A stretch of 64,000 nucleotides of DNA, taken from contig JAAOMT010000096.1 in NCBI GenBank assembly GCA_016748015.1, forward strand, positions 62,001 to 126,000, given 5' to 3'. The notes under the pieces were generated by a model, which worked only from the letters and a program-made list of their open reading frames with translations, was not told where the DNA came from and did not search any database. Of this stretch, positions 4,600 through 56,699 are shown piece after piece. A program made the position numbers and the translations under genes. The first letter of the stretch is position 1; each line of letters starts with the position of its first letter. The DNA comes from Geosiphon pyriformis uo1. Lineage: Eukaryota > Fungi > Glomeromycota.

Positions 4600-7500
4600 T
4601 TAATCTTGTCTTATTCTTGAGAGACTATTAATATTGGTGTGTAATTTTTTTGGTTTGTGGTGTACAATATATTTGTAGTCTGTTAGGAAATCATTCCATT
4701 AAGACTGTTTGGCACTTTGTTCAGTTTTCTTTTTATTGAGCCATTTAAAACCAATATTGTCAGTTATGATATCAAATTTTTTTCTATTTTTTAGGTATTG
4801 CTGAAAATATTTAATAGCCCAAATAATTGCAGCAGCTTTTAATTCAGTTAAGCCATATTTGAGTTCTGTTGACTTGAATGTTCTACTGGCATAGACAATG
4901 ACTTGCTCCTGGCTATTTTCATCCAATTGTGATAAGATAGTACCAAATGCTATATGTGAAGCATTAGTGGCTAGTTGAAATCATTTGTTGAAATCTGAAT
5001 AAACAAAAACTGGAGCTGTTGTTAATTTTGTCTTGAGAGTTTCAAAAGCTTTTTGTTGTTCTTTAGTTCATTGGTATAGCACATTTTTGTTGATAAGATA
5101 ATTGAGTAGTTTGGCAATTTCTGAGAATCTTTTTATGAATTTTCAATAGTAAGAGGCTAATCCTATAAATTCTCATAGTTCTGTAGTATTTTTGGAGATT
5201 TGAAAGTTTTTGACAACACTAATTGTTTCAAAGTTTGGTTTGACTTCATCTTTGCTAACAATGTGTCCAAGAAAGATTAGGCTTGTTTTTCCAAAATAAT
5301 ATTTCTCAATGTTTAACTTCAATTCTGTTTTCTGTAATCATTGAAAAACTTCTCACAAGTGAATAAAATAAGCTTCAAAGTTTGGTGAGTATACATTAGT
5401 GTTATCAAGATAGACAACTACTGATTGCCATAAGAGTCCTTTATATACAACATCCATGAGTTATTGGAATGTTGCTGGTGTATTGCAGAGTTCAAAAAGC
5501 ATAACATTGAATTCATAGTTTCCTTTTTGAGTGGTAAATGCTGTTTTGGGTTGATTTTTTGGGTTTATTTCGACTTGTTAATATCCATTTTCCAAGTCTA
5601 AAGTTGAAAAAAACTTGGCTTTTCTTAAAGCATCTAACATGTTATCAATTTTTGGAAAAAGATAGACATCTCCAATTGTAACACTATTCAATTGTCAATA
5701 GTCAACACAAAATCTGATTTTTCCATTTTTTTTTTAATAAGAACTACTGGTAAGACCCATGGACTTCTTGATGATTGAATCAATCCGTTATTAAGCATTC
5801 CTTGGATTTTTTCTCTAATAAATTGGTAGCTAGCAGGTAGAACTTAATAGACTTGTTATTGTTTTAGTAAAGCATCTCCTGTATAGATCTAATGTTGAAC
5901 AATATCAGTTTTTTCAAGGTCATTGTTGTTTTTTGCAAATATATTTGCAAATTCAGCTTTTAGCTGTTTTAATTGTCTTTGTTATTGGGGTTCTAAGGAA
6001 CCCATGTTGATTCGAAAGAGTTTTTCTTCCAAAAGATGGTAGTTTTCAATGGTAGGAATGATGTTCGGATTTAGAAGTAATATATGTTTTATAATTTCGA
6101 TAAAATTAGAGACAATTTGAGGGTTTTTATTTTGAAAGATGTTACTGTATATGATTCCAATCTCTAATTTTTTTAATAAGACAATAAGGTAATTATTGGG
6201 GTTGTAGAATGTAACTTGAAATTTTTTTATTCCTTTGGGAATATAAATATTTGGGATTGAGATTTCATGCTTCAAACAAATTTGTTCATTGGACTTAAAG
6301 ATTTGTTGCGTAGTGGTGGGTTTTGAGCAAATGTAAATTTCGTAATGTTTTCCAAAAGGTGAAATAGTAATTGGTTGAGGAAGTTAAAGAATCTGGTGGG
6401 ATTTATTCTGTGCATTGAGAGCTATGTTTACTGGTACTGTAAATCGTTCAGTTGAACCAAAACCTTGTATTTTTTTTTTACTTTTTCCCAATTGTTCTCT
6501 GTTGTTAACTGATTGTAAACCCGAAATGTTGATTAAAGATAAATAAATTGCTTGGGCAATCTTTTTGGCATGTTCAATCTTGAATGGTTTGTCTGTTTCA
6601 TTTTGCAACATGATGATAATGTCTCCAGTATATTCTACATCTATGACTCCTCCTTTAACATTGATTCCTTTGCTTGCCAATGATAATCTGGATGCAATTT
6701 GAACCATTGCTTTAGGTGAAATTTCAAGAGCAATTTTGAGATTGATTTTTGTCAAGAACTTTGGTTGGAGAACCAAGATATCTTTTCTTGGGTATCTTAG
6801 ATCATATCCAGCATCAATCTCGTATGCTTTTTCTGGTCTGATTCCTTGGCTATAGTTGTCAAAATATTTAAGTTGTAGAGGTGATTGATTTTCAAGAAGA
6901 TAGATGAGAGTGATTGGTAGTTCTTTTATCAGTTTAGATACTCTAAATTCGATTTCATTTTCATCATTCTCATCTGGCAAGAGAATGCTAAAAGCATAGC
7001 ATTCTAAACACCATTGATCATCACAAAACATAACACATTCTTTACATAATTGAATGTTCATTTGCTTTAATCATTGAATTTGAGCTTCTTTGGTTGGGTA
7101 TATATGACTTGCAATTTGGTGGTAGGTTTCTACTTTATTTTCATAATCAAATTCAGCTAATTCTATAGTATATTTAATGTATTCAGTTTCTTTCATTTGG
7201 TGGACATCTTTTTGGGTGGCTCTATTGATTAATGCTATTGCTAAGTCAAAAATTATTTCAGTATCATGAGAGTAGTAGTAGAGTTTATTGAGAGCACTGT
7301 TGTATGCTGCATCAAATAGTGTTCTTTTTCTGACTTTTTCCGAGATTGATAAAGCATATTAACAGGTTTGATCATATATTCCTCTTCTTATTGCAACATC
7401 AATCCAGTTGTATTTTTCTGGTAGTATATTTCCATATGTGAGACAAGAAGTGTTGTTTCATTTTTTACTTCTTTTTGGAAATTCAAATCATTCTCTATGA

Positions 7501-10264: not shown

Positions 10265-11192
10265 TATTACTGGAAGTTTTTGGTCTCTTTTCTTGAATGT
10301 TGTTACTGTTTGTCTGTTGTTAATTTTATGTTTTCTGAAAACAATTGAATCTCTAATAACTGAATTTATCTTCAAATTATCTCTTATAATTTGAACTGCT
10401 GGGCTTATGAGTAAAATGGCCAATTTTTTGCCAGTTACTTTATGTAGTTATGTTGTAGTAAACATCAACTCTTTCCCAGAAATTGCTCATCTAAAAGCTC
10501 ACTAAAAATGTGTAGTTACTTTGCTGTGAAAGTCAACTCTTCTACAGAAATTTCGTCTATAGGCTTTTCTAATGATTATGATAAAAAAAGTAAAAGAAAA
10601 TAAAAAAAATATAAAAGAAATAGAATTTTATCAAAGGAAACGTTTTCTATCCAGGCCTGAAATCACTAACAGTTTACTGAAATTGGTAGTTAATCAATTT
10701 CAAAATGTTAGTTGTGTTGGAAGAATTTCAAATGTAATAATTTTAAGGATTTGGTTTTCAAATATTTACTTTTTATTTTAATGTGTAAAAAATGATTTGT
10801 TCCAATTAAGATATCTAAAGTAAAGTACTGTGATAAGATACTATGAAAAGATACATTTTTTTGAAGAGAAAAGCTCTTCTTTTATACAACTTGCTGTAGT
10901 ACTAGTCTTTGAACTTGCACTTTTCTCTTTGCTACAATTTGGGTGAACTAAAGATACATTTCGGTGAACTACAAGTTATTTCACTGAACTATTGATTATT
11001 TCGGCCAATTTCTATTAATTTCGGCGAATTTTAATTTCTAGAGTACAAATCGGATTATTGATTGAGTAATAATATTTGATAATTTGATTAAATAATAAGT
11101 GATAATCGAAATAATAATAATATATGCTAATTAATAATAGGAATTATAAAGGTAATTTTGTGCTAATTAGTAGCTAAATTTTGCTGATAACA
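10265..11192 (-). repeat. 5' LTR of A1
   Basis: TGTTATCAGC...TCCAGTAATA, followed by TT and the PBS. Confidence 0.93.
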
Positions 11193-12742: not shown

Positions 12743-14364
12743 ATATAATTACTTTGCAGTAAAAGTCAACTCTTTTTCAGAAATTGTTTATTTAAAAGCT
12801 TATAAAAAATGTCTAGTTATTTTGCTATAAAAGTCAACTTTTTTACAGAAATCTTATCTGTAAACTATCTTAATATATATAATAAAAAATGTAAAAAAAA
12901 CATAAAAAAAAAAAATTTTATTAAAAAAATCATTTTTAGTTTAAATCTAAAATTACTAACAAATTATTAAAATTGGTAGCTAATTAATTTCAAAATATTA
13001 ATTAAGAATTGATGAATTTTAAGTGTAATAATTTAAAAAATTTGTTTTTTAAAGTATTTGTTTTATTAATTTATATATATAAAAATGATTTTAAATAAAA
13101 TAATTCTAAATAAAATTATTATTTCAAGATAAGATATATTTTTTCAAAGAGAAAAACTCTTCTTTTATACAATTTATTATAGTATTAGTTTTTGAATTTG
13201 CGCTTTTTTTTTGGCTATAATTTTAATAAATTTAAAAATATATTTTAAACTACAAATTGTTCCTATAAATTATAAATTATTTTGGGTAAATTATTAAATT
13301 ATTTTACAAAATTCTATAAAATTTAGCAAATTCTTGAATGTTATAAAGTTTAGAATATTGCATAATTTAATTATCACAATTTGTGTATTATATAAATCAA
13401 GTTATTAATTAGGTAGTAATATTTAATAATTTAATTAAATAATAAGTAATAATTGAAACAATAATAATATATGTTAATTGATAATAAAAATTATAAAAAT
13501 AATTTTATGTTAATTAATAATTAAAATTCTATTAATAACATAATTTTTTTTTAAGATTGAGTTTTATTAAAGTCCAAGTACTATCCATAATATTAAGATA
13601 ATAATCCAAAATTATTGATGTAATTTAATTTGAAAATTATTGAAATTTCACTTCTGTAAGCTTGTCAATATATTGTATTTTTATTAGTTGAAATATTGAA
13701 TTTTATAGGATATTTTTACAAGTATTGAATAAATTATGAAGTCTAAAAGCTATTTTAAGTCTGTAGTGAGCATTTATTTATCTAATTATTGTATTAAATT
13801 CATTGTGAATTTGTTTTTATATAGCTTCAAAAATAAAATTAGTTGTTTTAAGTTTCAGTTTTCATTGATACAATGTTTTTTTAATTTGAAAATATCAATA
13901 AATAGAGGTATATTTACTGTTTTTATTAAGATATATTTAAAATTTTTGTTGTATTATAATATTTAGGAAAATGTTAATAAGAATAAACAATAAGTTTTTT
14001 TTAAAATTTGTTTTAAAAGTTCTAATAAGTAACTTTTAGAATAACTTCTTGTGTTTTTTCTATAAGAATAATAATTTTGCAAATTATTTACTATTAAAAC
14101 TATAGTTTTTTTCTAAATATTATTAATTTGACTTCTATTAATTATTATAAATAAGTTAAAAAATGTTTTTAAGACTAATATTAATTTTTTAAATATTTGC
14201 TAAATATTTCAAAAAATAAGTATTATAAAATAAAAATAATAATAATATTTTAGAAAAATAAAAAAAAATTATTTTTGGGTATTAAAATTTTTATATATTT
14301 TTTGGTTTAATTGTTTTTTTTATAGTTATTTTACTATTTTTGTTTAATATTTTTGTGTTATTTT

Positions 14365-25853: not shown

Positions 25854-28240
25854 ATATTATTAAAATAGACAACTACTAATTACCATAAAAGTTTTTTATA
25901 TACAATATTTATAAGTCACTAGAATATTGCTGGTGTATTGCAAAGTCTAAAAAACATTATATTAAATTCATAGTTTTTTTTTTGTATAGTAAATTCTGTT
26001 TTGAAATAATTCTTAAAATCTATTTTAACTTGTCAGTATTTATTTTCTAAGTCTAAAGTTAAGAAAAACTTGGCTTTTCTTAAGGCATCTAATATGTTGT
26101 TAATTTTAGATAAAAAGTATATATCTTCAATTATAATACTATTTAATTAACAATAGTTAACACAAAATCAAGTTTAAAATTATTAATTACTAGCAAAAAA
26201 ATTGGTTCAATTCAACCAATTTATATTATAAAACTGGTTTCAGTTAAATAACAATAAATTTGGTTTTAATAATTAATTAGTACTTCATAATAACAACTAA
26301 TAGCCACCCAAACATTTTTACATTCAACCTAGTTATTTTACAATACCAGAAAATTAGAATTTTTATTATATTGTACTTTTAAAAAGTAAAACTACAGTAT
26401 AATAGTAAAATTTTTTTCTTAATTATATTATAATTTTATTAGCAAAGATTGTCAAAAATGCTAATATTTTAAACATATTTTCATTTAAATTTGAAGTTAA
26501 TAAATTTTTTTTTTACTTAGCAATATAGCAGTCTTTGAACAAAAAACAATTATTACTATATATATAAAAGCTAAAATTAAAAAAAATTTATTTAATTAAT
26601 CTTAAATAGTAAATCTATTGAAAGTATTATTACTTATTAATTGATAAAACAACTCAAAAAAAATATAGATTGACTTATTTAAACAGTAATTATTATAGCT
26701 AATAATATAAAAAAAATATCAGTAGAAAAAATTAACAACTTTTTTTTATTGTTAATAAAATTATCATTCTAATCAAAGTTTTTATTATAAATATATTTTA
26801 ATATTAAGTTCTTATTGGAAATAATTGGCTTCTTAAAGCTAATATAAATTTAGATTAGAAAATATAAAAACTAAAGATTTTTATTAAGAACAATACATTT
26901 ATTTATGATACTTTTAATAAACAATCAAAAAAAGCATTAGTTTTTGAATTTAAAAAAGAATATAAAAAACTAATTATTAAAATCTATATGGTTTTAACTT
27001 TTGGTCTGATTTAGTTAAAAAAGCAAAACAACAGCTATTTGATTAATTTAAACTATAATTAACATTATAATTAAAAAATTCTAATTAACAAATATTATTA
27101 ACAACAATAATTAAACAAATTAACAATTAATATGTTCTTTATTTTAAGCCACAATCTAAGAAACAATCTGTTTATATCTTATTTAAATACAAAAATTGTA
27201 ATAAAAAGCTTTTATTTATGGAAACTTGTATATTATTAAAAAAAAATACAAAACTTATATTTATTACTACTGTAAAGTTTATTATTAAAAACAATTTAGA
27301 AGTTCAAAATAAAGTAGAAAATAAAATAACATATTTTGTCTTATATATAAAGAATTGTTATTAGAAAAATACAATTAGATTGATGTTATAATAAGAAAAA
27401 ATGTCTGTAATTAAATTTGTTAATATGCTCTCTTTATTTTGAAAAAAGTAAAATAATGAATATTTTTTATTGCAGCATATAATAACACTCTTAATATACT
27501 ATATTATTTATATGATGCCAAAATAATCTATAAACTGACAATAATTCTAATTAATAGAAGATTTCAAGAAAATATTTATTAAATAAAAAAGACAGAATAT
27601 ATTAAATATACTATAAAATTAATCAGATCTGACTATAAAAATAAAGTAAAACTTTACTAACATCTAATTATGTATATTTTTTTAAAGAAACTCAAATATA
27701 ATAGTTAAAACAAATAAATATTCAACTTTACAAAGAATATATTATGCTTTGTAATAATATATAGTATCTCAAATACTATACTATTATTTATTGAAGATGA
27801 TTAAAAAAAAACTAAATTCAGAAAAATTGAAAAAAAAGCTTTAACAATTCTAATTTACTTTAATAAAAACCAATTTGTTTTATTTTTCAAATACTTTAAC
27901 AACAATAAGCAAAGAATTAACTTAAAAAAAGTCTACAAAATTAATACAAAATATGACTTATAATATTTAAAAAATAATATATTTATCTTGAACTAAAATT
28001 ATTTACAAATATTTACCTAAAAATTGTTTTTAAAATTCTATTAAGAACAATAATACAAATTGCTTTTCAATTATTACTAACAAGCAAAAAAATTAATATT
28101 AGAAGAAAAATTATAAATATTAAATATATTAAAGACATTATAGTAATATTCCAAAATGAAACTGAAAAGCCATTTATAATTAAACATGTTAAAAAGATTG
28201 CTTAAGCTATTTATTTATTTTTAATCAACATTTTGGGCTT

Positions 28241-29215
28241 TGTTACCAGACAAAATTAGAGATATTATTTAGCATAAAATTATCTTATAATTCCTATCAT
28301 TAATTAGCATTGTTTCAAATTATTACTTATTACATTAGCAAAAATGTCCGAAATTATCATTTAATTAATAACCCAAATTGTACACAACACAAATATAACC
28401 TAATTGCGATGATCAATCATGCAATACCCCGAACTATGTAACATTCAAAAGTTTGCCGAAATTTATAGAAATTTGCTGAAATAATTAATAGTTTACTGAA
28501 ATATCTAATAGTTTGCAGAAATAACTTGTAGTTCACCAAAATGTATCTTTAGTTCAGCAAAATTGTAGAAAATAGCAAAGTTCAAGTTCATAGAATAGTG
28601 TTATGACAAGTTGTATAAAAGAAAAGCTTCTCTTTTCGAGAAAATGTATCTTACTTTTGATTTAACAATTAGAATCATTCTTTATACACAAAAAACAAAA
28701 TAAATATCAAATAATTCGAAAAATCAAATCCTGAATTATTTCACTTTTGAAATTAACTAATTCCTACTAAACAGTTTGAAATTGATTAGCTACCAATTTC
28801 AGTAAACTGTTAGTGACTCCAGGCCTGGATAGAAAACACTTCTCTTGACAGAAATTTTATTTTTTTTACATTTTTTTTATTTTTCTTTTATTTTCTTATT
28901 ACAATCATTAGGGTAGCCTACAGACGAGATTCCTGTAGAAGAGTTGACTTTCACAGCAAAGTAACTACACATTTCTAGTGAGCTTCCAGACGAGCAATTC
29001 CTGGAAAAGAGTTGACATTTACTATAACATAACTACATAAAAGCAACTGGCAAGGAATTGGCCATTCTACTCATAAGCCCAGCAGCTCAAATTATAGGAG
29101 ATAATTTGAGAATAAATTCAGTTATCGAAGGTTCAAACACTTCTCATAATTGTAAATTAACAGCATTACAACAAACATACAAGAGCTAAGAAGAGACCAA
29201 AAACCTCCAGTAATA
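28241..29215 (+). repeat. 5' LTR of A4 (975 bp)
   Basis: Direct repeat of 37124-38424 once the gap duplication is removed. Confidence 0.96.
28613..28652 (+). promoter_or_regulatory. Candidate TATA box of the family A LTR
   Basis: GTATAAAAGAARAGCTTCTCT...AAAATGTATCTT is conserved in all A-type LTRs, including the divergent one at 57907. Confidence 0.55.
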
Positions 29216-29217
29216 TT

Positions 29218-29235
29218 TGGTGCTCTCCTACAGAA
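29218..29235 (+). promoter_or_regulatory. Primer binding site (TGGTGCTCTCC...)
   Basis: TGG 2 nt after the LTR end, complementary to a tRNA ending ...GAGCACCA; conserved in A1. Isoacceptor not determined. Confidence 0.85.
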
Positions 29236-29260
29236 ACAACACAGCAAAAACAACTTCAAA

Positions 29261-32200
29261 GTGGCGACCACACCAGACACAACAACTTTAGAGTATTACC
29301 AATCAATTTACACCCACTGCAAGCAAAGATTCAACATTCCAGACGGAATTGAAATTGTCAAGAAATCAGTATACCAATACATTGAAAACCGCATCAACAA
29401 TTATCTTTTTGGAAATTACAATATCTTAGAAGTTAGAAGCAATCTTTACAATAATTTAGCACACTATTCACAGTTGGGAACTGAAGACCTTAACAGTGAA
29501 ACACTTGCCACTTACTTTCACAAACTTAATTTTAACATTATCAAATACTGTGAAAAAACATATCTAGTGCAGTCTCAATACACTATTGATTTTGAATCAG
29601 AAACAGAAACAAGCAACAAAGGCAAAAACAAATTGAAGCAATACTCAAAAACCACCCCAAATACTCCAATACTACCAAAAACAACTGCCAACCATTTACA
29701 AACACCTGAACAAGGAACCAGTTCAAAACTTCCACTTACTATCACATCTTTTCCAGCTTCATTTGCACAAGCACAAACACCTAATTCACCCTTGAATCGA
29801 TTTGCAAGACCAGAAGATTTTACATCACTCAGAAGTTCCACCAAACAACAAGAACTCCTTTAAACTAGTTCCAATCTCCTTGATTTTCTAGCTGAAAATC
29901 AAAGTAAACACTCTGAGACAGCAGCAAACAAAGAAAACAACTCTGAAATAACTGAAGAAGAATTAATAAACAGTGAAAACGAAGAAGACAAAATGACAAC
30001 ATACATCGCAAAAATCCCTGAATTCAATGGAGAAGATATTGAGACCAGTCCCCAAAAATGGCTTGACCAAGTTACTAAAACTGGAGATGCAAATGAATGG
30101 AATGCTGCCAGAATGTTAAGAACAATTCCCTACTTTCTCAAAGGAACAACAGGAGAATGGTTTGAAAACCTGGCTGCCCCATTTAATGATTGAAATGCTT
30201 TCAAAGCAGCCTTCTTTGAACAGTTCACTGACAATAATACCTCCATTACCCTTCACAATTGTTTTCGAAATATCAAACAAAAACCCTCCAAATCTGTTAT
30301 GACTTATATTGGGAAATTCAACAAACTTCTCAAACAAATTCGCCAACTTGAAACAAATGATTATTATTCCGATGCTCAAATCTTGGATCAATTTATCACT
30401 GGTCTAAAAGATAAACTAATTAAAAAGGTTTGCCCACATGCGCCAAAAGATTTAAACTCTGCCATACAGCATGCGAAAAGATATGAAATGGCCATGAAAG
30501 AGACCAATTGCACAAAACTTGTAAATTTGACAATTGAAGAAACCAGCTCAGCAGCCGAGAAAAAAATTGACCAACTCACAAAGAAGATTGAAAACTATTT
30601 CACCAATCAACAACAACAGCAACCCCAAAAATATCAACCATCCCAAAGACGAAATCAAAATAACTTTGCACCACTTTCTAATAACCAGCCTCAAAATTGC
30701 CATTACTGTGGAATCTCTGGCCACTGGAAAAGAGATTGCAGAAAGCTACAATGGGACCAACAAAATAGGAGTAATCAACATTACCCTCCATCACAGCAAT
30801 CTTATTATCAACCACCACCACCAGCTTACTATCTACCAAGACCCCAATACCAAAATAACTATTATCAGCCAGCCCCACAGCCAATCCAACAGCAATACCA
30901 ACAACCACCCACACAACATTATCAAGTACCTGTTCAAAAACTGATTACATAAAATCAATTCATACCACAAAACTAATACCAAGTAAACAACAATAGAATC
31001 AGTTCGAACAACCAATTGGTTTTCCGAAATTCCACTTAATCAAGACCCAACCACTACCACACTCAACCCAGTTATTTAACAATGCCAGAAGAACAGGAGT
31101 TTCACCATACTGCACCCTCAGAAGATAGAGCTGCAGCACAACAACAAAACTCTTCTCATAATCACACCACTATTCCACCAGCCCGAATTGCTGAAAACGC
31201 CAATCTCACTGATATTTTTTCTTTCGAGTTTGAAGCCAATGAATTACCATTTCTACTTAGCAATGCAGCTGCCAATGAACAAAAAGCAATCACGGCTATG
31301 TACACTGAAGCAGAAGTCAAAGGAAAGACAATTCGCTTGATCCTAGACAGTGGATTCGCCAGAAGCATTATCATCTACCAGTTAATGCAACAGTTGAAGA
31401 AAAATGTCAACTGACCAGTTCAAACAGTAATCGTCACTGCCAATGGCATGAAAAAGACCCCAGTAGGAGAAATTGACAATTTTCCATTTACTCTTGATGG
31501 AATCACCATTCCAGTCAAGATTCTTGTAATAGACGCATCCCAGTACCAAGCTCTCATCGAAAATGATTGGCTTCAAAAAGCCAATGCTAATCTGAATTGG
31601 GAAATACAAGAGTTAACAATTTCCTACCAAGGACGACATGTCCGAGTACTTGCCACTTGTAGTACATTTAACAAACGCTCTGAAAAAGCCCCAGCTTTTG
31701 AATTCAAACCAAAAGAGAAAAAACCCCTTATTGAAACATTCATGGCACTTGGATTAACATCCAACTGGGCCAATAAAACAAAACAAGAACATTTTACCCC
31801 GCACTCTGAACCCAAAACCTCTGGATGGAATATACCTTACTCAAAACCCGAACCAAGAAAACAATGCCTCTATATTCCTCTTAAATGTAAGGACTGCCAC
31901 AAGAAACTATCGTCAATGGAAGCCTATATTTCACTTGAAGAAAAATATGAAAATCATACTTGTTATTACTACAAGGCTTGCCACAGAGAACAATAGGACC
32001 ATCTAATAAAAAGAAGTGGAAAATGGGACAACACCCCTTGTTTGACTTGTAAAGATATGCTACTGGAAGAATGCAATTGGATTGATGTAGCCATAAGAGG
32101 AGGAGTCTGCGATCAGACCTGCCAATATGCTTTATCAATTTCAGAAAAAGTAAAAAGAGGAACACCCTTTAATGCGGCATACAACAGTGCTTTCAACAAA

Positions 32201-34879
32201 CTTTATCACTACCCCCATGATGCTGAGATGATTTTCGACCTAGCAATGGCATTAATTGCTGGAGCTAACAAAGAAGATGTTCGCCAAATGAAAGAAGCAG
32301 AATACATTGAATACACCATGGAATTAGCTGGATTCGGTTATGAAGACGAAGTAGAAGTCTATCACCAAATTGCAAGTCACACCTACTCAATCCAAGAAGC
32401 TCAAATTCAACAATTAGAGCAAATGAACATTAGGCTATGTGAAGAATGCATTATGCTTTGTGATGAACAGTGATGTCCTAAATGCTATGCTCTTAGCATT
32501 TCCTTGCCCAGTGAAAATGATGAATACGAAATTGAATTTGGAGAACTTGAAGCGACAGAAGAAATTGAGACAACACTCACCTATCTCATCGAAAATCAGC
32601 CTGCTTTACAACTCAAATATTTCAACAACAATGGACAAGGAATAAAACCAGAAAAAGTTCACAAGATTAATGCTAGATATGATCTAAAATATCCAGGAAA
32701 AGATACTCTTACTTTCAAACCCAAATCTCTCACAAAAATCAACCTCAAAATTGCCTTTGAAATTCCACTAGGAGCAATGGTTCAAATTGCTTCTCAATCA
32801 TCCTTGGCAAGCAAAAGAATCAATGTTAGAGGAAAAATCATTGATGCTGGATACACAGGAGACATCACAGTCATGTTACAAAATGAAACTGATAAACCTT
32901 TCAAAATTGGATATGCTGAAAAAATTGCTCAAGCTATCTATTTACTCTTAATTAACATTTTGGGTTTACAAGTAGTTAATCAAAGAGAACAGTTGGGAAA
33001 AAGTGAAAGAGAAACACAAGATTTTGGTTCAACTGAATGTTTCACAGTTCCAGTAAACATAGCTCTCAATGAACAGAAAGAATCTTACCAGATTTTACAA
33101 CTTCCACAACCAATTACCATTTCACCCTTTGGAAAACACCCTGAAATTTACATTTGTGAAAAGCCAACAACCACACAACAAATTTTTGAATCAAATGAAC
33201 AAATCTGCTTGAAACATAATATCTTGATCCCAAACATTTATATTCCAGAAGGAACAAAGAAAGTCCGAGTTACTTTTTACAATCCCAACAATTATCCCAT
33301 ACTTTTATTAAATAACTTAGAAATTGGAATCATTCACAGTAACATCTTTCAACAAGAATTACCCCAAACAGTCCCCAATTTTTCTGAAATTATTGGACAT
33401 TCACTACCAAAAATCAACTCAAACTCCAGCTCCGAAAACTACCATATTGTTATGGAAAAACTATCTTGAATTAACATGGGACAACTTGAACCACAACAAC
33501 AAAACCAGCTCAAGAAACTAATTGCAGATTTTGCCGATATCTTTGCCAAAAACAACAATGACCTAGGAAAAACCGATTTGGTGCAACACCAAATCTATAC
33601 AGGAGATGCCAAACCAAGGCGACAACAAGCCTACCGAGTTGCTCCAGAAAGCCACCAATTTATCTGAGAAGAAGTACAACGGATGCTTAACAATGGGCTT
33701 ATTCAACTATCAATGAGTCCATGGGCCTCACCAGTGGTCCTAGTTAAAAAAAAGAATGGAAAGATACAATTTTGTGTTGATTATCGACAACTTAACAGTG
33801 TCACTATTAGGGATGCTTACCCTCTTCTGCAAATCGATGACATGTTAGATGCCCTTGGAAAATCTAAATACTTTTCAACATTAGACCTAGAAAGTGGATA
33901 CTGGTAAGTTGCCATGAATCCTAAGGACTGCCCCAAAACAGCATTCACAACACAAGGAGGAAAATATGAATTCAATGTAATGCCCTTTGGATTATGCAAT
34001 GCGCCAGCAACATTCCAAAGACTCATGGATGTTGTATATGCTGGACTTCTTTGGAAATCAGTAGTTGTCTATCTTAATAACACTGATAGTTATTTCCCAT
34101 TTTTCGAACTTCATTTAATTCACCTGTGAGAAGTTTTTCAACGATTATGTAGGGCAGGATTAAAACTAAACATTGAGAAATGTCATTTTGGAAAAACAAG
34201 TTTGGCCTTTCTTGGTCACATAGTTAGTGAAGAAGGAGTCAAACCAGATCCAGGAAAAATCAGTGCTGTTAAAAAGTTCAAAGTTTCACAAAATACTACA
34301 GAACTAAAAAGATTCATAGGATTAGCATTCTACTATCGGAAGTTTATCAAAAGATTCTCGGAAATTGCAAAACCCCTTAACCAGCTCACCACCAAAAATG
34401 TTGAATACAAATAGACTACTGAACACCAAAAAGCTTTTGAAATTCTCAAGGAAAAACTGACAACAGCTCCAATCCTCGCCTACCCGGATTTCAGCAACCG
34501 ATTTTGACTAGCTACAGATGCTTCATATACTGCTTTTGGTGCCATCTTATCACAACTAGATGACAATAGAAATGAGCGAGTAATTGCTTATGCTAACAGA
34601 ACATTAAAACCAGCTAAGAAAAACTACCCTGCCACAGAACTAGAAACAGCAGCCATAATTTGGGCCCTACACTACTTCAACCTTTATCTCAGGCCTAAAA
34701 AATTCGATATTATCACTGATAATATTGGACTCAAATGGCTTCAGAACAAAAATACTCAGCTGAATGCAAAACAAACCCAATGGACAGGATTTCTAGCAAA
34801 CTATTAATACATAGTACATCACAAACCAGGAAAACTCCACACCAATGTTGACTGTCTCTCCAGAATGAGACAAAATTAG
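29261..34879 (+). pseudogene. Single-frame Gag-PR-Cys-rich-dUTPase-RT-RNaseH polyprotein of A4 (point stops only)
   Basis: The domain-bearing ORF fragments from 29261 to 34202 all start in the same frame. Capsid-like IPEFNGED, CCHC CHYCGISGHWKRDC, PR LILDSG, dUTPase motifs, RT SPWASPVVLV/DYRQLN/MPFGLCNAPATFQR, RH ending HTNVDCLSRMRQN-stop. Confidence 0.95.
32600..33035 (+). pseudogene. dUTPase domain within Pol
   Basis: Trimeric dUTPase motifs: (D)A(G)YDL, AS(R)SSLA, IIDAGYTGDI, KIAQAI, R..Q(G)FGST. The A1 copy retains DAGYDL and GFGST. Confidence 0.93.
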
Positions 34880-36293: not shown

Positions 36294-36435
36294 CCTCACA
36301 ACTTGAACACTTAATTTAAATTTATTATTATAGTTATCTTCTTATAATTTAGAAACAATCTCACAAAAACAAAACAAAAATAACATAAAAACCCATGCAC
36401 CAAAAATAATTTTCTTTTATTTCAAATCGCTTATA

Positions 36436-37155
36436 ATGACTATTCCTCAAAACATTCAACAATTATTCCAAAAACTAATGTTAGTTTTAAAAACAATACC
36501 CGAATTATCCATTACTGTTATTGGAAACCACATTAATTATACCCAAACAGAAGTAGTTACAAATTTAGCCCCAAATTTACAAAAATATCACCCGTATAAG
36601 AAGAACACAAGAAGTTATACTGGAATTCACCTGCCAAAACTTTTAAAACTTGCTTTAAGAGAAAATCTAATGCTCATTCCGATTAGTATTCTACCAAATG
36701 CTACAATTCAACAAAGACTTCAACTGTGTTTCAATGAGAAAAACACTGAATATCCTCCAATTTATAGATATTTTCACATTGGAAAAACACTCTACAAACA
36801 GAAACTGGAACTTACAACAGCAAACTTCGCAAAAAAAGCTATTCAGAAACAACTTCACAACGAATTCAAGACAACAGCTGGATCAATAAACAGTCGCTAC
36901 AGGCTCAGAGCTGCTCTTAGACTTTATGACCTATTCCACACCTGTGAAAACGTACTACAAAACCCAATTTTTCAACCTTTGAAAATTCAATATATTGAAA
37001 AGCTCACAGAACTGAAATTTCAACAATTTTCAGACCAATTTTCTTCAATAATTTTGGATTATTATCTGGAAATGACAAACAGTACTTGGACTTTGATGGA
37101 GCTCAGTCTTGAGAAGGAGGTTATGTTATCAGATGAAATTAGAGATATTATTTAG
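36436..37155 (+). CDS. Family A ORF3, 239 aa, unknown function
   Basis: Intact ATG-to-stop ORF at the env position, with homologues in all four A copies; overlaps the PPT and the first 32 nt of the 3' LTR. Confidence 0.85.
   Translation: MTIPQNIQQLFQKLMLVLKTIPELSITVIGNHINYTQTEVVTNLAPNLQKYHPYKKNTRSYTGIHLPKLLKLALRENLMLIPISILPNATIQQRLQLCFNEKNTEYPPIYRYFHIGKTLYKQKLELTTANFAKKAIQKQLHNEFKTTAGSINSRYRLRAALRLYDLFHTCENVLQNPIFQPLKIQYIEKLTELKFQQFSDQFSSIILDYYLEMTNSTWTLMELSLEKEVMLSDEIRDII
37111..37120 (+). promoter_or_regulatory. Polypurine tract
   Basis: GAGAAGGAGG, 3 nt before the TG of the 3' LTR. Confidence 0.85.
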
Positions 37156-38424
37156 CATAAAATTATCTTATAATTCCTATTATTAATTAGCATTGTTTCA
37201 AATTATTACTTATTACATTAGCAAAAATGTCCGAAATTATCATTTAATTAATAACCCAAATTGTACACAACACAAATGTAACTTAATTGTGATGATCAAT
37301 CATGCAATACCCCAAACTATGTAATATTCAAAAGTTTGCCGAAATTTATAGAAATTTGCTGAAATAATTGATAGTTCACCAAAATATCTAATAGTTCGCA
37401 GAAATAACTTGTAGTTCGCCAAAATGTATCTTTAGTTCAGCAAAATTGTAGAAAATAGCAAAGTTCAAGTTCATAGAATAGTGTTACGACAAGTTGTATA
37501 AAAGAAGAGCTTCNNNNNNNNNNNNNNNNNNNNACTTATTACATTAGCAAAAATGTCCGAAATTATCATTTAATTAATAACCCAAATTGTACACAACACA
37601 AATGTAACTTAATTGTGATGATCAATCATGCAATACCCCAAACTATGTAATATTCAAAAGTTTGCCGAAATTTATAGAAATTTGCTGAAATAATTGATAG
37701 TTCACCAAAATATCTAATAGTTCGCAGAAATAACTTGTAGTTCGCCAAAATGTATCTTTAGTTCAGCAAAATTGTAGAAAATAGCAAAGTTCAAGTTCAT
37801 AGAATAGTGTTACGACAAGTTGTATAAAAGAAGAGCTTCTCTTTTCGAGAAAATGTATCTTACTTTTGATTTAACAATTAGAATCATTCTTTACACACAA
37901 AAAACGAAATAAATATCAAATAATTCGAAAAATCAAATCCTGAATTATTTCACTTTTGAAATTAACTAATTCCTACTAAACAGTTTGAAATTGATTAGCT
38001 ACCAATTTCAGTAAACTGTTAGTGACTCCAGGCCTGGATAGAAAACGTTTCCCTTGACAGAAATTTTATTTCTTTTACATTTCTTTTATTTTTCTTTTAT
38101 TTTCTTATTACAATCATTAGGGTAGCCTACAGACAAGATTCCTGTAGAAGAGTTGACTTTCACAGCAAAATAACTACACATTTCTAGTGAGCTTCCAGAC
38201 GAGCAATTCCTGGGAAAGAGTTAACGTTTACTATAATGTAACTACATAAAAGCAACTGGCAAGGAATTGGCCATTCTACTCATAAGCCCAGCAGCTCAAA
38301 TTATAGGAGATAATTTGAGGATAAATTCAGTTATCAGAGGTTCAAACACTTCCCATAATTGTAAATTAACAGCATTACAACAAACATACAAGAGCTAAAA
38401 AGAGACCAAAAACCTCTGGTAACA
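37124..38424 (+). repeat. 3' LTR of A4 (contains a 20-N gap with overlap duplication)
   Basis: Matches the 5' LTR; 37207-37513 is repeated after the Ns. Confidence 0.93.
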
Positions 38425-41400
38425 GCTTGTAATTATTTAAAAATCAAAAAAAACTTGGCAAAAGTAAAAGAAAAACTCAAAACTTTAAATTAATTAAATA
38501 GTTTAAAGTTTTAGTAAATATAGCTTTCAATATACAAAATAAATCTTACCAGATTTTCAGATTACCAAAAACAAATATTATTCTATTTTTTAGAAAAATT
38601 TATAAAATATACATTTGTTTAATACCTATTATTATTTAATAAATCTTCAAATCAAATAAACAAATATGTAAAAAATATGAAATTTTGATTTCAAATATTT
38701 ATTTCCCAAAAAAAATCAAAAAAATCAAGATTACTTTTTACAATTTAAACAATTATTTTATTATATTAAATAACTACTTGGAAATTAAAATTATTTATAT
38801 TAATATCTTTTAATAAAAACTATTACAAAAAGTTTTAAATTTTACAAAAATAATTGGACATTTTCTTTTAAAATTTAACTTAATTCTTACTATTAAAAAT
38901 TATTATGTTGTTATTAAAAAATTATCTTAAATTAACATAAAACAATTAAAGTTACAACAATAAAAAAAATTCAAAAAATTAATTGCAAAATATATAGATA
39001 TATTTGTTAAAAATAACAATAACTTGAAAATTAATTTGATTTAACATTAAATCTATATAAGCAATACCAAATCAAAATACCAGTAAACATATTAAGTCTT
39101 AAAAAGCTATTAATTTATTTAAAAAGAAGTACAATAAATGTTTAACAATAGACTTATTTAATTATTAATGTGTTTATAAATTTTACCAGTAGTTTTTTTA
39201 AAATAAAAAATAAAAAAATCTATTTTTCTGTCAACTATTGCCAACTTAATAATAATATTATTAAAATATTTATTTTTTATTATAAATTAATAATATGTTA
39301 GATGTTTTTAAAAAATCTAAATACTTTTTAACATTAAATCTAGAAAGTGAATATTAATAAGTTATTATAAACTTTAAAAATTGTCCAAAAACTATTTTTA
39401 TTACTTAAAAAAAATTATAAGTTTAATATAATGTCTTTTAATTTATATAATATACTAATAACATTCCAAAAATTTATGAATATTGTCTATATTAAACTTT
39501 TTTAGAAGTTAGTAATTGTCTATTTAAATAATATTAATGTCTATTTACTCTTATTCAAAGCTTACTTAATTCATTTGTAAGAAGTTTTTCAATAATTATA
39601 AAAAATCAAATTGAAATTAAATATTAAAAATATTATTTTAAAAAAACCAACTTGGCTTTTTTAAATCATATTATTAATAAAAAAAAGTCAAATCTAATCC
39701 AAAAAAATCAGTGTTGTCAAAAACTTTAAAGTTTTATAAAATACTATGAAATTAAAAAAATTTACTAAATTAGTATTTTATTATTAAAAATCTATTAGAA
39801 ATTGTCAAATCATTCAACTATCTAATTAACAAAAACATCGAATATAAATAAATAGCCAAATAATAATAAGTCTTTAATATTCTCAAAAAAAGCTTATAAT
39901 AGTCTTAATTATTATTTATTTGAGTTTTAACAAAAGATTTTAACTAGTTATAGATGTCTTTTATATTGTTTTTGGTATTATTTTATCTTAATTAGATAAT
40001 AATAACAATAAACAAATAATTGTTTATACTAACAGAACACTAAAACCAGTAAAAAAAATACTTTGCCATTAAACTAAAAACAGCATTAATAATTTGGGCT
40101 TTTTATTATTTCAATCTGTATCTTAAATCCAAAAAATTCAATATTATTATTAATAATATTGAACTTAAATAACTATAAAACAAAAACTTTAAACTAAACA
40201 CAAAACAAATCCAACAGACAAAATTTTTTGCAAACTACTAAAATATTGTATATTATAAACCAAAAAAGCTTTTCATAAATGTTGATTGGTTTTTCAAAAT
40301 AAAACAAAATTAAAAATCTTAAATACCATCCAATTTAATTAACAATAACAAACAATAAACAATAAACTCTAAAAATTATAACAATCTTAAACAATATTTA
40401 AAAATATTTATAATACTAAAAATTAATTTTTAAGTAAAAAACATTGATTATAATACCAAATAAAACAATATTTTCTATATAACAATATTATTTATTATTT
40501 AAACTATAAAAATTTAAACAATTTATTCAGAGTAATTTAAAAACATAAAAAAAAATTTTATATAACATATATTTAGATCTTTTATCAGTATATTTTGAGA
40601 AAAATAGCACAATTTAAAAAATATTAAAATGCTATTTTTGGCTTTAAATAATAAAAAATATTTACTAATATATTATGTCTTATAATAGTTGTCAAAAAAA
40701 AGGAGAAATATGCTCCATAAAACTACTAAATTCAATCAAAATTGAACAATTTTTTAATTAAATTGGTATTAATTTAGTTAGATCACTACTTATTACAACT
40801 TAAGAAAATTAATAAATTGTAATTGTAGTAAATTATCTTACTAAATAGTCTAAAACAAAAGCTATTCAATAAGTAGATGCAAAATTAATCGCAAATTTCA
40901 TTCATAAAAACATTATTTGTAAACATAAATGTTTAATTAAACTTTTATTCAATTAAGAAACATATTTTATAAACAACCTAGTACAAGAAATTTATGAAAC
41001 AATTTAATATTAAAAAACTTTTATTTTTGCCCTATTATTTATAAAAAAATAAATTTGTAGAATATTTCAACAAAACACTTTGTAAATATTAGTCAAAGTT
41101 TTAACAAATTTTAAGCAAAAATAAAATTTTTTTATTTTATTAGTATTACTAGTATATAAAATACTAAAACAAGATATAATAAAACATATACTATTTAATT
41201 TGACATATAAAAAAACAGCAATATTATTAATTAATTTTATAGTAAAATCTTATTTAATTTAACTAATTATTAAATACAATTTTTAAGTAATACTACATAA
41301 AAAAGTATACTTATTTTTTAGTATATTGAAAAAAAAAACAAATTGTAACTATCTATATAAAACACTTTTAAGCTTAACAAAAAGAATAACATAACAATAA

Positions 41401-41493: not shown

Positions 41494-42467
41494 TATTACC
41501 AGAGGTTTTTGGTCTCTTTTCTTGAATATTGTTAATGTTGATTTGCTGTGTATTCATGTTTTCAGAAAGTAATTGGACCTCCAGTAACTGAATTTTTCTT
41601 CAAATTATTTCCTATAATTTGAACTGCTGGACTTATAAGTAGAATGGCCAATTCTATGCCAGTTACTTTGTGTAGTTACGTTGTAGTAAACATCAACTTT
41701 TTCTTAGGAATTGCTTGTCTGGAAGCTTACTAAAAAATGTGTAATTACTTTGCTGTGAAAGTCAACTCTTCTACAGGAATCTTGTCTGTAGACTACCCCA
41801 ATAATTGTAATAAGAAAAGAAGAAAAAAAATAAAAGAAATGTAAAAGAAATAGAATTCTGTTAAGAGAAACGTTTTTTATTCAGGCTTAGAGTCACTAAC
41901 AGTTTATTGAAATTAGTAGTTAATCAATTTCAAAACATTAGTTGTGTTAAGGGAATTTCAAGTACAATAATCAAAAAATTTGGGTTTCAAATATTTACTT
42001 TTTATTTGAAATGTGTAAAAAGTAATTTGTTTCAATTAAGATATCTAAAGTAAAATACTATGATAAAATACAATGAAAAGATACATTTTTTTGAAGCAAG
42101 AAGCTCTTTTTTTATACAACTTGTTGTAATATTAGTCTTTGAACTTGCACTTTTCTCTTTGCTACTATTTGGGTGAACTAAAAATACATTTTGGCAAACT
42201 ACAAGTTATTTTACTGAACTATTGATTATTTCGGTCAATTTTCATTAATTTCAGCAAATTTTGACTATGTTAAATGGTTCAGAGTATTGTGTAATTTGAT
42301 TATCTTAATTTTTATTGTACAAATCAGATTATTGATTAAGTAATAATATTTGATAATTTAACTAAATAATAAGTGATAATCAAAATAATAATAATATATG
42401 CTAATTAATAATAAGAATTATGAGGGTAATTTTATGTTAATTAATAGCTAAAGTTTTATTGATAATA
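41494..42467 (-). repeat. Solo LTR family A
   Basis: Complete A1-type LTR with no internal sequence; TSD CCAA/TCAA. Confidence 0.92.
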
Positions 42468-43546: not shown

Positions 43547-44943
43547 CAGGTCATAATTATTAAATACTCCTCCTTTCAAGGATAGTTGCTATTAATTGAA
43601 ATGAAATTATATTAATAAAATATCTTTTTAATTCTTCAAATTCATGTTATTATCTACTACTTAATCTGCTGGCACAATAGCCTTTGATTATGGCTATTGA
43701 CAGAATACTTATTTTTTATTTTATTTTCTTTATTTCCTTGTTTTTTTTTATTTTTTATTTTTTTATTGTGGAGCAGCAACATAGTAAAATTGCCTGTTTG
43801 GGAATAGACTTTGTGATAGCCTGGTAAAAGAGGAAAGCTCTCTCTAGGTTTTTGAATATTAACATTATCTTGATAGCTTATCAGAAAGATGAAAAAACAA
43901 TGCCAGACCCTAATGACTACACTTGTTAACTTGGAGAAAAAAGCTCACTTTTATAAGAAGTTGCAATCAGCAAGAACCAAAACTCTGTGTCTTATAATCA
44001 AAGAACTCAATAAGTAAATTTACAACCAGTAAATAAGACTTTTAAAGACTGATAATTAAGACTAAGCCAGCAGAATTATGTGAAAAATACATTACCAATA
44101 CTTAAGAACACTAAATGTTATCATTTTCCTATTCCACCAAGTTTATCAATAATACCATGAAGTTTTTTTTTAATTATATAAGAGACATATTAGGATTTAT
44201 CAATCTTTAAAAATTTTCATTATATATTACTTTACTTATTAAGTTTTTTAATTATAAGACACAAAGATGCATTTTGGTAAGTTGTAATTGTAGATATAAG
44301 CTATTTTTTCTAAGCTAATCAAGTACAATTGTTAGGATCTGATATTGTCTTTTTGCCTTTTTAGTAAGCTAACAAAATAAAATTAATATCCAAATCTAAA
44401 AAAACCTTTTTTTTTATTAAACTATTATAAGATCTATTTTTAAACAGTCAATTTTTAATATTGTTACTTTACAGAAAAAAAAAATCAAGAAAAAACAAAA
44501 ATAAAAAAAATAAAAAAAAATAAAAAAATAAAATAAAATAAAAAATTTATATTATTAATTACTGTAATTAAAAACAATTGATTCAAGTCATTAGAATTTC
44601 AAAGCTGTTTATATTAATAGCATTTAGTCTGGAATAAAAGTAAAAAAAATAATTAATTTAATTTTGACAACACAAAATCTGAGATTATATATAAGTAGAT
44701 TAAATAATATTTTTATTTAATAATAAATAAAAAAAATATAGAAAAAATAAGAAATTGTTGTTAAAAATACAAAAAAACAAAACTTCTTTCTCTCCTATGT
44801 CCCAAATTTCTGAAATAGCACACTTTTTGAAAGAAGTTTTTTGGTTTTTTATCTGTTCTTATCTTTTATTTTGCTTGGTTTTCACAATTTCTCAACTTAC
44901 CAATCCTTTCGTTGTCCCTTTAGTGTCTGATGCTGTTAATGCT

Positions 44944-51456: not shown

Positions 51457-54016
51457 TGTAGTCCTGGTTGGCTTGAGTAGCTAGTTATATATAGTAAAAG
51501 CATGATTCACATTTAGTATAGATCATTATTTTAATGTATTGTTACTAGGCAGTGTTTGGACTTCACTCATTAAACTTAATAAAAAATAAAATAAAAAAAT
51601 AAAATAAAAAGTTTTATCAAGTTTTAAAGCTAAAATATGTTTTAAAAAAATAAGTTTTTGTTTTCTGTCTGTTTTTTTTTATCTGTTACAACTACTTATT
51701 TTTATATATATTTTTTAATTTTACAAAATTTCTTTTAATTGTTTATTATTACTAGTTATTATTTACTATTTTTATTATTGTTTTGTTTTTTTATATTATA
51801 ATTAATTATTTTATGTTATAACTAATTATTTTGTGCTATTTTATATTATTATGTATTATTTTGTATTATCTTAAGTTATTATATATTATTTTGTACTATT
51901 TTGTATTATTATATTTTTTTATATTATTATGTATTAATTATGTTTTTTTAATAGCTTTAGATTGGTTTTTCTATTTAAGTAATATAATCAATAAATTTAA
52001 AGTTGAAAATAAAGTTTTCTTATATAAAACTAAAACTAAAAAACAATAGAGTAAAAAATTCAATTATAAATAAAATGAATTATTTTATATATACAAAATT
52101 TTAAGAAATAAATTATATAAGTTAAGACTTAATAAAAAAATTTTAAAAAAAGTTGTATATAATGATAAACTAAAACATTATTATTTTAGAACCAATTTTA
52201 AATTTCTAATATTACAAATTAGTACACAATTTTTTTTGATTAATCTTAAAAATATTTTCTAAAACTTAGAATCAATAGTTATTATTAAACAATTTTTAAA
52301 CTTAATTATTTAAAGTTTTAATTTTTTTTATAGTTATTTTTTATATTTTAGAAACAATTATACAAAAACAAAATAAACTGCACAGAAAAACAAAACAAAA
52401 ATAATATAAAAATCTTACATACCAAAAATAATTTTATTTAATTATATTTTTATTATGATTATTTTCTAAAACATTTAACAATTATTCTAAAAATTAATAT
52501 TTTTCTTAAAAATATTACTTAAATTATTTATAACTATTACTAAAAAACATATTAATTACACTTAAACAAAATCTGTTATAATTTTATTTACAATTTTATG
52601 AAATTACTATTTTTATAAAAAAAACACAAAATGTTATTTTAGAATTTACTTACCAAAACTTTTAAAGCAAGCTTTAAGAAAAAATTTAATGTTTATACTT
52701 ATTAATATTTACCAAATATTATAATTTAACAAAAACTTTAATAGTGTTTTAATAAACAAAACAACAAATACATTCTAATTTATAGATATTTTTATATTAA
52801 AAAAACACTTTCTAAAAAAAACTAGAGCTTAAAACAGCAAATTTTATAACTAAAGCTATTTAAAAACAACTTTATAATAAATTTAAAACAACAACCAAAC
52901 CAAAAAAAATCTAATACAAACCTAGAGCAGCTTTTAAACTTTATAATTTATTTTATATTTGTGAAAATATTCTATAAAATCCAATTTTACAATTTTTAAA
53001 AATTTAATATATTAGAAAACTTATAAAACTAAAATTTTAATAATTTTTAGATGAAATTTCTTCAATAATTTTAGATTATTATCTGAAAATTACAAACAAT
53101 ATTTGGATTTTAACAGAGTTTAGTCTTAAAGAAAAAATTATATTACTAGCCAAAATTTAAGATATTATTTAGCATAAAATTATTTCTATAATTCTTATTA
53201 TTAGTTAATATATATTATTATTTTAATTTATTACTTATTATCATATCAAATTATCTGAATTATTATTTAATTAATAATTTAATTTATACAAAACACAAAT
53301 ATAACTAATTTATAATAATTAGATTATATAAATACTTTAATCTATGTAATATTTAAAATTTACCAAAATATTTAACAGTTTATTAAAATAATTTATAGTT
53401 TACAGAAATAACTTGTAGTTTAATGAAATATATTTTTAGTTTACCAAAATATTAAAAAAAAAAATACTAAATTATAAAATAGTATTATAATAAGTTATAT
53501 AAAAGAAAGACTTCTTTTTTCAAAAAAATATATCTTAATTAAAATCAACTTTTTATTAGATATTTTCTTTACAAATTGATTTTAATTAAACTTATTTTTA
53601 AACCTAAATTTAAAACAACTTTCTTAAACATATTTTTCATTTTTTTTTAGTTTATTTTCTTTTTTTCTTTTATTTTTTTTATATTATTGAGTAGTTTACA
53701 GTCGAAATTTTCTATAAAAGAGTTAATTTTTACAACAAAATAACTATACATATTTTTAAAAAACTTACAGACAAAATTTTTCTGTAAAAGAGTTAACTTT
53801 TACTGCAAAATAACTATATAAGTAATTAGTATAGAATTGGCCATTCTATTATAAACTCAACAACATATATAATCTAAAGTATAAATTAGATTATTAAAGA
53901 TTTATTGACTTTTATTAATAGCAAAATTAATAACAAAATAACATTAATAATAACAAAAAAAGTTAGAAAAATCTCTTTAATAATAACAGAAAAGATTAAA
54001 AAAACCTCTAGTAATA

Positions 54017-56586: not shown

Positions 56587-56699
56587 ATAATATATTTGTG
56601 ATTTTAAAAAACAATTTTAAAAAATATTCTAATTTAAAGTTATTTAACTTTTTTGTTGTAATTTAATAATAAAAATTCTAACATAATATAATTTTAGAC

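Follow-up and report, generated by a model that had tools for sequence, protein, structure and literature searches.

A duplicated double-hairpin module in the LTRs of a Ty3/gypsy retrotransposon family of Geosiphon pyriformis, a candidate structured leader RNA

The DNA analysed here, 64,000 nucleotides of the G. pyriformis uo1 genome referred to below as the window, carries several LTRs of one retrotransposon family (family A) in which a preliminary description had recognised two tandem double hairpins and proposed an undescribed functional motif. The question raised by this locus is whether the pairing reflects selection on a folded nucleic acid, be it RNA or single-stranded DNA, or just the mutational history of a repeat, and, in the former case, what the structure might do for the element that carries it.

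Host element and anatomy of the module

In G. pyriformis, around 41% of the genome is made up of LTR retrotransposons (PMC11952901). The window itself consists of such elements, nested and decayed, with GC contents of 10-40%. The module studied lies in the 5' LTR of a plus-strand family A element with the following features:

28237-28240 and 38425-38428: target-site duplication GCTT (4 bp) flanking the element
28241-29215, plus strand: 5' LTR, with ends TGTTACC...GTAATA, the latter decayed from GGTAACA
29218-29228, plus strand: tRNA-type primer-binding site (PBS) TGGTGCTCTCC, after a TT spacer at the end of the 5' LTR
37111-37120, plus strand: polypurine tract GAGAAGGAGG
37124-38424, plus strand: 3' LTR, with ends TGTTACC...GGTAACA

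The LTR pair with TG..CA ends, the target-site duplication, the PBS, the polypurine tract and the gag-pol region in between identify a bona fide LTR retroelement. According to Pfam, its internal region includes a Retrotrans_gag/Ty3 capsid with a CCHC knuckle, a dUTPase, a reverse transcriptase (RT), an RNase H and an integrase, and many stop codons interrupt the coding sequence. The module has the same orientation as gag-pol, i.e., the sense strand. A protein search with the Gag fragment at 30194-30949 detected more than 200 relatives, and all those listed or looked up were hypothetical proteins of G. pyriformis from assembly GCA_016748015.1, down to around 30% identity; word-index and exhaustive protein searches with this Gag piece showed none from other species among the proteins looked up by name. 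The relatives at around 30-46% identity led to other G. pyriformis families, named here B1 to B4, C and D.

Other features of the window were also recorded. The dUTPase domain (32474-33466, plus strand, Pfam E = 2.5e-14) is located inside pol, between the gag/protease region and the RT, and is likewise found in the sister-family loci L002, L005, L007, and L008. Between the integrase and the 3' LTR there is a third frame of 263 codons (ORF3, 36334-37122, plus strand), for which a Pfam search returned no domain. The 3' LTR contains a 326-bp internal tandem duplication (37208-37507 and 37534-37833) that doubles its TATA-like box (37494 and 37820), whereas the 5' LTR lacks it. Immediately before the element, the sequence at 28002-28240 is 73-75% identical to the family A internal dUTPase region (32732-32967 and 6517-6755), and thus the element is nested in an older relative. 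In addition, a tandem array with a 57-bp period is present at 60541-60854, in surroundings of very low GC, and ARAGORN detected no tRNA-like gene in the window or in L001 to L005.

The sequence at 28915-29037 reads as the preliminary description claimed, as two tandem units of around 66 nt, in each of which an AAG linker joins the 6-bp hairpin 1 to hairpin 2, whose 4+5 bp lie on either side of a bulged G:

28846-28902, plus strand: T-rich tract adjoining the module on its upstream side
28915-28941, plus strand: unit 1 hairpin 1, AGC-CTACAG-loop of 9 nt-CTGTAG-AAG (-6.4 kcal/mol, z = -3.45)
28942-28969, plus strand: unit 1 hairpin 2, AGTT-G-ACTTT-loop of 6 nt-AAAGT-AACT, then ACA (-3.0 kcal/mol, z = -0.44)
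28981-29009, plus strand: unit 2 hairpin 1, AGC-TTCCAG-loop of 11 nt-CTGGAA-AAG (CTGGGA at insertion)
29010-29037, plus strand: unit 2 hairpin 2, decayed here (ACATT/AACAT; ACGTT/AACGT at insertion)

In unit 1, AGC (28915-28917), CTACAG (28918-28923), the loop ACGAGATTC and CTGTAG (28933-28938) are followed by AAG, AGTT, the bulged G (28946), ACTTT, CACAGC, AAAGT, AACT, and ACA (28967-28969). Unit 2 runs in the same way through AGC (28981-28983), TTCCAG (28984-28989), the loop ACGAGCAATTC, CTGGAA (29001-29006), AAG, AGTT, G, ACATT, TACTAT, AACAT, AACT, and ACA (29035-29037). Alongside AAG, the linker shows a common variant, AAAAAGTTGAC (AAAAAG).

Some details of this anatomy needed correction. 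The arm CTGGAA, given in the preliminary description as the partner of TTCCAG, is indeed read in this copy, but it is the product of a post-insertion G>A change; the element's own 3' LTR and most other copies have CTGGGA, so the insertion state was TTCCAG/CTGGGA, with one U.G wobble. The bulged G, said to be invariant, is replaced by A in five decayed units. On the other hand, the reconstruction of unit 2 stem 2 as ACGTT/AACGT is sound, as it follows from the CpG decay variants of other copies; in the copy at 28915-29037 this stem is broken (ACATT/AACAT, two C.A mismatches).

The module had been claimed for every family A LTR, and all eight family A LTR copies of the window carry it, the seven others being:

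1551-1674, minus strand: module in the 3' LTR of a minus-strand family A element
10442-10565, minus strand: module in the 5' LTR of the minus-strand family A element
12743-12866, minus strand: module in an LTR truncated just past unit 2, where unit 2 has a TTCCAG-type stem 1 and ACTTT/AAAGT as stem 2
38124-38247, plus strand: module in the 3' LTR (37124-38424) of the plus-strand element
41670-41794, minus strand: module copy
53694-53819, plus strand: heavily decayed module copy with a CTACAG-type stem 1 in unit 2
58223-58349, plus strand: module in a divergent solo LTR, with CTACAGT/ACTGTAG in unit 1 and the flipped CTGTAG/CTACAG in unit 2

Both pairs of arms attributed to the divergent solo LTR were seen, CTACAGT/ACTGTAG at 58225 and, in flipped form, CTGTAG/CTACAG at 58295. 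Eight further copies were detected on other G. pyriformis contigs, two each in L001, L002, and L003 and one each in L005 and L008. Outside this genome, a metagenome scan with the family B/D pattern gave 0 matches, and the 9 matches to the family A pattern were discarded as chance, all of them being without the upstream hairpin and the second unit.

Pairing retained through sequence change

As the paired LTRs of one element are identical at insertion, their differences were taken as neutral change. Eight elements from the window, L001 to L004, L006, and L008 showed 514 transitions against 35 transversions (94% transitions, around 15:1), with CpG hit hardest and CpA, CpT, CpC and every context affected. 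This suggests that the repeats of this glomeromycotan fungus undergo hypermutation, either RIP-like or driven by methylation. Blocks of 10-19% GC, in the 52000-64000 region, look like the end state of such decay. Because copies within a family differ almost only by post-insertion C>T/G>A decay, they are not independent evidence, and the use of the copies as a record of covariation in the preliminary description was overstated; what counts as evidence is the few differences that separate units, subfamilies and families from one another, and these were the comparisons considered informative.

Hairpin 1 of family A presents four arm types, with pairing retained in each. Unit 1 has CTACAG/CTGTAG arms, which recur in unit 2 of the subfamily found at 53143 and in L005. 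TTCCAG/CTGGGA arms characterise unit 2 in the main subfamily and are seen again at 13519. The divergent LTR at 57588 supplies the other two types, CTACAGT/ACTGTAG in its unit 1 and the flipped CTGTAG/CTACAG in its unit 2, the last type being known from a single copy. RNAalifold run on 30 aligned units predicted the hairpin 1 helix alone, with 4 of its 6 pairs compensated. In these 30 units, 91.8% of the cells pair, compared to 85.5% in shuffles (0 of 500 reached 91.8%) and 33-51% when the partner was slid, and doubly changed cells amount to 29 vs. 14.4 expected. By our own estimate, around 0.5 six-bp hairpins are expected per 120 nt of this composition, so one of them would not be unusual. The exact frame AGC-arm of 6 nt-loop-complementary arm-AAG gave 16 matches vs. 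1.2 in shuffles in the first 175 kb scanned, and AAGAGTTGAC with at most one mismatch occurred 19 times vs. 4.5 expected. Three occurrences of AAGAGTTGAC in L001 (minus strand, around 7750), and its presence in L006, look unrelated to the module, being located inside a family B internal region that shows a KELT repeat in a by-eye translation.

The claim that stems compensate while linkers stay fixed holds well for hairpin 1, both in family A and in its sister families, with the AGC, AAG-AGTT-G and AACT-ACA flanks kept, but much less so for hairpin 2, where one pair covaries. The sequence of the latter (AGTT-G-ACTTT/AAAGT-AACT) is conserved, with one clean compensation from U-A to G-C, to which unit 2 of the main subfamily owes its ACGTT/AACGT stem. 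This hairpin is thermodynamically weak, and RNAalifold, run on the 30-unit alignment, did not call it. In terms of folding energy the module is ordinary (z = -0.83 for the whole module and -0.92 for the 328-nt putative leader). On the alignment of the whole module, RNAalifold preferred a long-range pairing of two GUUGAC segments, which is G.U-rich and lacks covariation.

Families B1 to B4, C, and D showed a structured domain at the same place of the LTR, 240-340 nt before its end, with flanks that can be aligned with those of family A (GG[A/G]TAGCC upstream and AACTG[C/G]CA...TGGCCA downstream). A homologous domain of this kind is present in the window:

43814-43894, plus strand: structured domain of sister family C, ATAGC-CTGGTAA-AAG ... 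ATAGC-TTATCAG-AAA

In these families, the AGC...AAG frame holds an outer 7-bp helix, with arms CTGGTAA/TTACCAG shared by B and C, and CTCAGAG/CTCTGAG found in D, so that 4 of the 7 pairs differ between B/C and D, all of them compensated. An inner hairpin, ACCC-loop-GGGT, is conserved among the sister families, with loops that cannot be aligned between subfamilies. Both the outer and the inner helices were recovered by RNAalifold.

Some additional observations were made on the sister families. In B, C, and D the same flanks accompany both arms of the outer helix (GGATAGC-arm-AAG twice; L004:12178-12258 on the minus strand, L006:9778-9858, L009:8872-8952 on the minus strand and other copies), so AGC opposes AAG at both ends of the helix in a pseudo-symmetric duplex. 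In family A, the LTR is bounded by terminal inverted repeats (TGTTACCAG...CTGGTAACA; 28241-28249 and 38416-38424) to which the B/C arms CTGGTAA/TTACCAG are identical, a match that may be coincidental. Family B shows a 10-nt palindrome, TTGACGTCAA, containing the CRE consensus TGACGTCA, 5 nt before the hairpin and around 25 nt past the TATA-like box (L004:12260-12275 on the minus strand, L007:12150-12165, L006:9760-9778). Finally, some B1 copies have AATAAA in the loop of a GCCAG/CTGGC hairpin around 15 nt after the domain.

Altogether, around 10 independent compensatory events were counted, all from one genome. At least five of these compensations are paired transversions, running against the 15:1 transition bias, and such paired transversions were found in stem 1 (A-U to C-G), in stem 2 (U-A to G-C), in a further hairpin at 29087 (U-A to G-C) and between families B and D. 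According to a rough estimate, which is not phylogeny-aware, these matched changes, especially the paired transversions, would not arise by chance. A rival to a selective interpretation is that the inverted repeats have no function and were kept or renewed by mutation itself, through quasi-palindrome template switching and duplication of units, with the compensatory look coming from the small number of lineages sampled. The small number of independent events and the unremarkable folding energies speak for this, and so does the course of the decay, which once ancestral wobble is set aside left 9 G.U against 17 C.A pairs in the stems and hence no preference for wobble. In the same sense, the L001 and L003 elements present stem-breaking G>A states in both of their LTRs (CTGAGA, AATTGAC, CTGTAA), which implies either that mismatched stems still permitted transposition or that the LTR pair was homogenised. 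However, mutation alone accounts poorly for a frame and a helix that persist across families with 30-46% Gag identity and unalignable loops, for paired transversions opposed to the prevailing bias, or for compensations in three different helices, and we regard the absence of function as distinctly unlikely.

Place of the module in the LTR and the rest of the putative leader

The position of the module was analysed with respect to the following features of the same LTR:

28611-28621, plus strand: TATA-like box TTGTATAAAAG, kept in family A including the divergent solo LTR
29054-29068, plus strand: GGAAT-TGGCC-ATTCT, a strongly conserved possible 5-bp hairpin with a GGCC palindrome
29087-29109, plus strand: 9-bp hairpin TCAAATTAT-AGGAG-ATAATTTGA (z = -5.5)
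29192-29228, plus strand: U5 segment AGAGACCAAA (itself 29192-29201) pairing with the TT spacer and the PBS TGGTGCTCTCC

The module had been placed around 300 nt downstream of a candidate TATA box, and this was borne out, with 301 nt in family A and a box that is conserved in families A, B, and D, where it aligns with ATTGATAAAAG / ACTAATTGATAAAAG of B and D. The distance from the box to the structured domain is around 36 nt in B, 95 in D and 301 in A, the domain being always downstream, and the family A module ends 178 nt upstream of the LTR end. As far as can be judged from sequence, this arrangement points to a place in the leader (R/U5) more than to an enhancer in U3.

A DNA-level role was weighed as an alternative, in which the module would be a tandem U3-type repeat of a promoter or enhancer. 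Its inverted repeats, together with the fixed core TTGAC(G/T)T, would serve as factor sites, such as bZIP half-sites, and any folding of the RNA would be a by-product. In favour of this, retroviral enhancers typically contain tandem repeats, TGAC is found within the invariant linker, TTGACGTT was present in unit 2, family B has the perfect TGACGTCA palindrome mentioned above, and the U5 segment complementary to the PBS could mark a transcription start further downstream. Yet the arms change while staying complementary, and even swap sides, whereas a dimeric factor that recognises a given sequence would not tolerate such changes; the AGC...AAG flanks mark one strand and form no palindrome; and the module lies downstream of the TATA-like box in A, B, and D. 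If this box is the promoter, the two hallmarks of U3 tandem enhancers, a position upstream of the core promoter and conserved factor sites, are absent here. A promoter or enhancer function thus appears unlikely to us.

Downstream of the module, the hairpin at 29087 also shows covariation when compared to the L005 copy and to the solo LTR, which reads CAAAGTAT/ATACTTTG at 58400. The GGAAT-TGGCC-ATTCC hairpin was considered as a possible kissing loop and is kept as an idea only, as it was not stable in the energy model. Complementarity of a U5 segment to the TT spacer and the PBS was found in every family (29192-29228; L007:8886-8957; L008:9301-9372; L004:9385-9450; L005:10700-10790), reaching up to 16 bp and -22 to -30 kcal/mol in family B, and the U5 segment covaries with the PBS across families, with TCACCAAA/TTTGGTGA in D and GAGCACCAA/TTGGTGCTC in B. 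The module is one part of this longer multi-hairpin region, which also takes in further hairpins and the U5-PBS stem.

The U5-PBS stem could be either a mimic of a tRNA 3' end that occludes the PBS or a sign of Tf1-like self-priming. The PBSs start with TGGTG, and we take them to resemble tRNA 3' ends, Trp-like in D and Thr- or Met-like in A and B; on the strength of this presumed likeness, tRNA priming is favoured. If a Tf1-like self-priming start occurred at the U5 segment instead, the module would fall in U3, and thus in the promoter and the 3' UTR, not in the leader. The module itself did not show complementarity to the PBS beyond chance: the pairing is weak, has two C.A mismatches and is inconsistent between families, the module was not a consistent partner when the PBS was matched to the LTR with RNAduplex, and the best complement of the PBS is the U5 segment (29192-29201). 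A CCTACAG sequence after the PBS was also considered as a partner of the module and rejected, because less decayed copies read TGGTGCTCTCCCACAG there, and it is a decayed PBS flank.

A location in R/U5 would also mean that the module is copied into strong-stop DNA, and the selected structure could then be single-stranded DNA, of either the minus or the plus strand, that helps or paces strand transfer during reverse transcription. The compensatory evidence applies equally to it, complementarity being strand-neutral. Against it, the U.G pair present in unit 2 at insertion corresponds to a C.A mismatch on the minus strand, the flanks are conserved without being symmetric, and 6-bp DNA hairpins with loops of 9-11 nt would be very weak. 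We consider single-stranded DNA an improbable target of selection; the U.G wobble that unit 2 had at insertion fits with sense-strand RNA.

Proposed function and relation to known systems

The most probable explanation, which we hold with moderate confidence, is that the module is part of a cis-acting structured leader RNA in a G. pyriformis clade of Ty3/gypsy retrotransposons, kept under selection. If, as we infer, transcription starts downstream of the TATA-like box, the genomic RNA would carry the module between its 5' end and the PBS, and, should the module belong to R, a second copy would be present at the 3' end of the RNA. Each unit would fold into the 6-bp hairpin, with its base flanked by the invariant AGC and AAG, followed by the weaker 9-bp bulged hairpin, and selection would act on the helices and on the single-stranded purine-rich flanks, not on the sequence of the arms.

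As to what this leader RNA might do, our tentative preference is for a packaging or dimerisation signal that would be bound by Gag through its zinc-knuckle nucleocapsid (NC), the site being duplicated in family A and acting jointly with the downstream hairpins and the U5-PBS stem. This preference is prompted by the repeated small helices, the invariant unpaired flanks containing G, and the CCHC Gag of the element. R-region hairpins that aid first-strand transfer rank next and are nearly as likely. There is also a slim chance that the AGC/AAG-capped helix, duplicated in family A and capped at both ends in B, C, and D, is a recognition module for a protein encoded by the element, such as the Gag zinc knuckle or the ORF3 product. 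If true, this would give an early-diverging fungal lineage a new RNA-protein motif or a regulatory pair of the TAR/Tat kind.

No described Rfam family was detected, as anticipated in the preliminary description, with 0 matches in the whole window at gathering thresholds (Rfam 15); the same search at 28300-29300 with E up to 10 yielded four chance-level matches, none over the module. The families covered included TAR, retroviral Psi/DIS, hammerhead, twister, pistol, HDV, and xrRNA. These data bear on the suggestion of a catalytic or nuclease-blocking RNA, i.e., a self-cleaving ribozyme or an Xrn1-resistant element, to which a structured RNA with no prior description and with invariant single-stranded linkers could correspond, and nothing else points there. 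No ribozyme or xrRNA family of Rfam matches even at E up to 10, two simple hairpins offer neither a pseudoknot nor a conserved core, and a different topology replaces them in the sister families, all of which makes this role very improbable.

A literature search found no description of this motif, and to our knowledge nothing is known about the cis-acting signals of G. pyriformis LTR retrotransposons. The portrayal of the feature as an undescribed motif agrees with the lack of Rfam matches, but the module appears to be part of a multi-hairpin leader of the sort expected in LTR retroelements, and so it is less exotic than that portrayal implies. As a conserved, covarying candidate leader domain, it could be used to map active subfamilies and to build a model of the Rfam type, and it opens a route to how Gag selects RNA in Glomeromycota.

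Among known systems, the R hairpins of retroviruses, such as TAR and the poly(A) hairpin of HIV-1, are arranged in tandem between the transcription start and the PBS, and their stems covary among lineages. The module resembles them in being formed by tandem hairpins with covarying stems, predicted to lie in LTR-derived RNA between the transcription start and the PBS, and the family B domain, around 36 nt past the TATA-like box, comes close to the 5'-terminal position of TAR. In contrast, the family A module is located around 300 nt past the box, its stems are shorter (6 bp) and without a TAR-type bulge or loop, and no Tat-like activator is known. With retroviral Psi signals, e.g., the gammaretroviral ones bound by NC, it shares the repeated small stem-loops and the conserved unpaired flanks containing G, in an element that encodes a CCHC Gag; it differs from them in lacking sequence or Rfam similarity and in lying upstream of the PBS, whereas Psi lies downstream, and the binding of NC is here putative. 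The U5-IR and U5-leader stems of avian retroviruses and the self-priming structure of Tf1 are similar in that a U5 segment pairs and covaries with the PBS region, but the U5-PBS stem is separate from the module, at least 155 nt downstream of it, and the module is not complementary to the PBS beyond chance. Finally, the 5' leaders of Ty1 and Ty3 in budding yeast are likewise cis-acting RNA structures of fungal LTR retrotransposons, with a need for replication established on the yeast side, although they consist of a pseudoknot in Ty1 and a bipartite PBS in Ty3, show no homology to the module and belong to a host of a different phylum. Most likely, then, the feature is an undescribed element of a well-known class, that of structured retroelement leaders, and involves no new principle.
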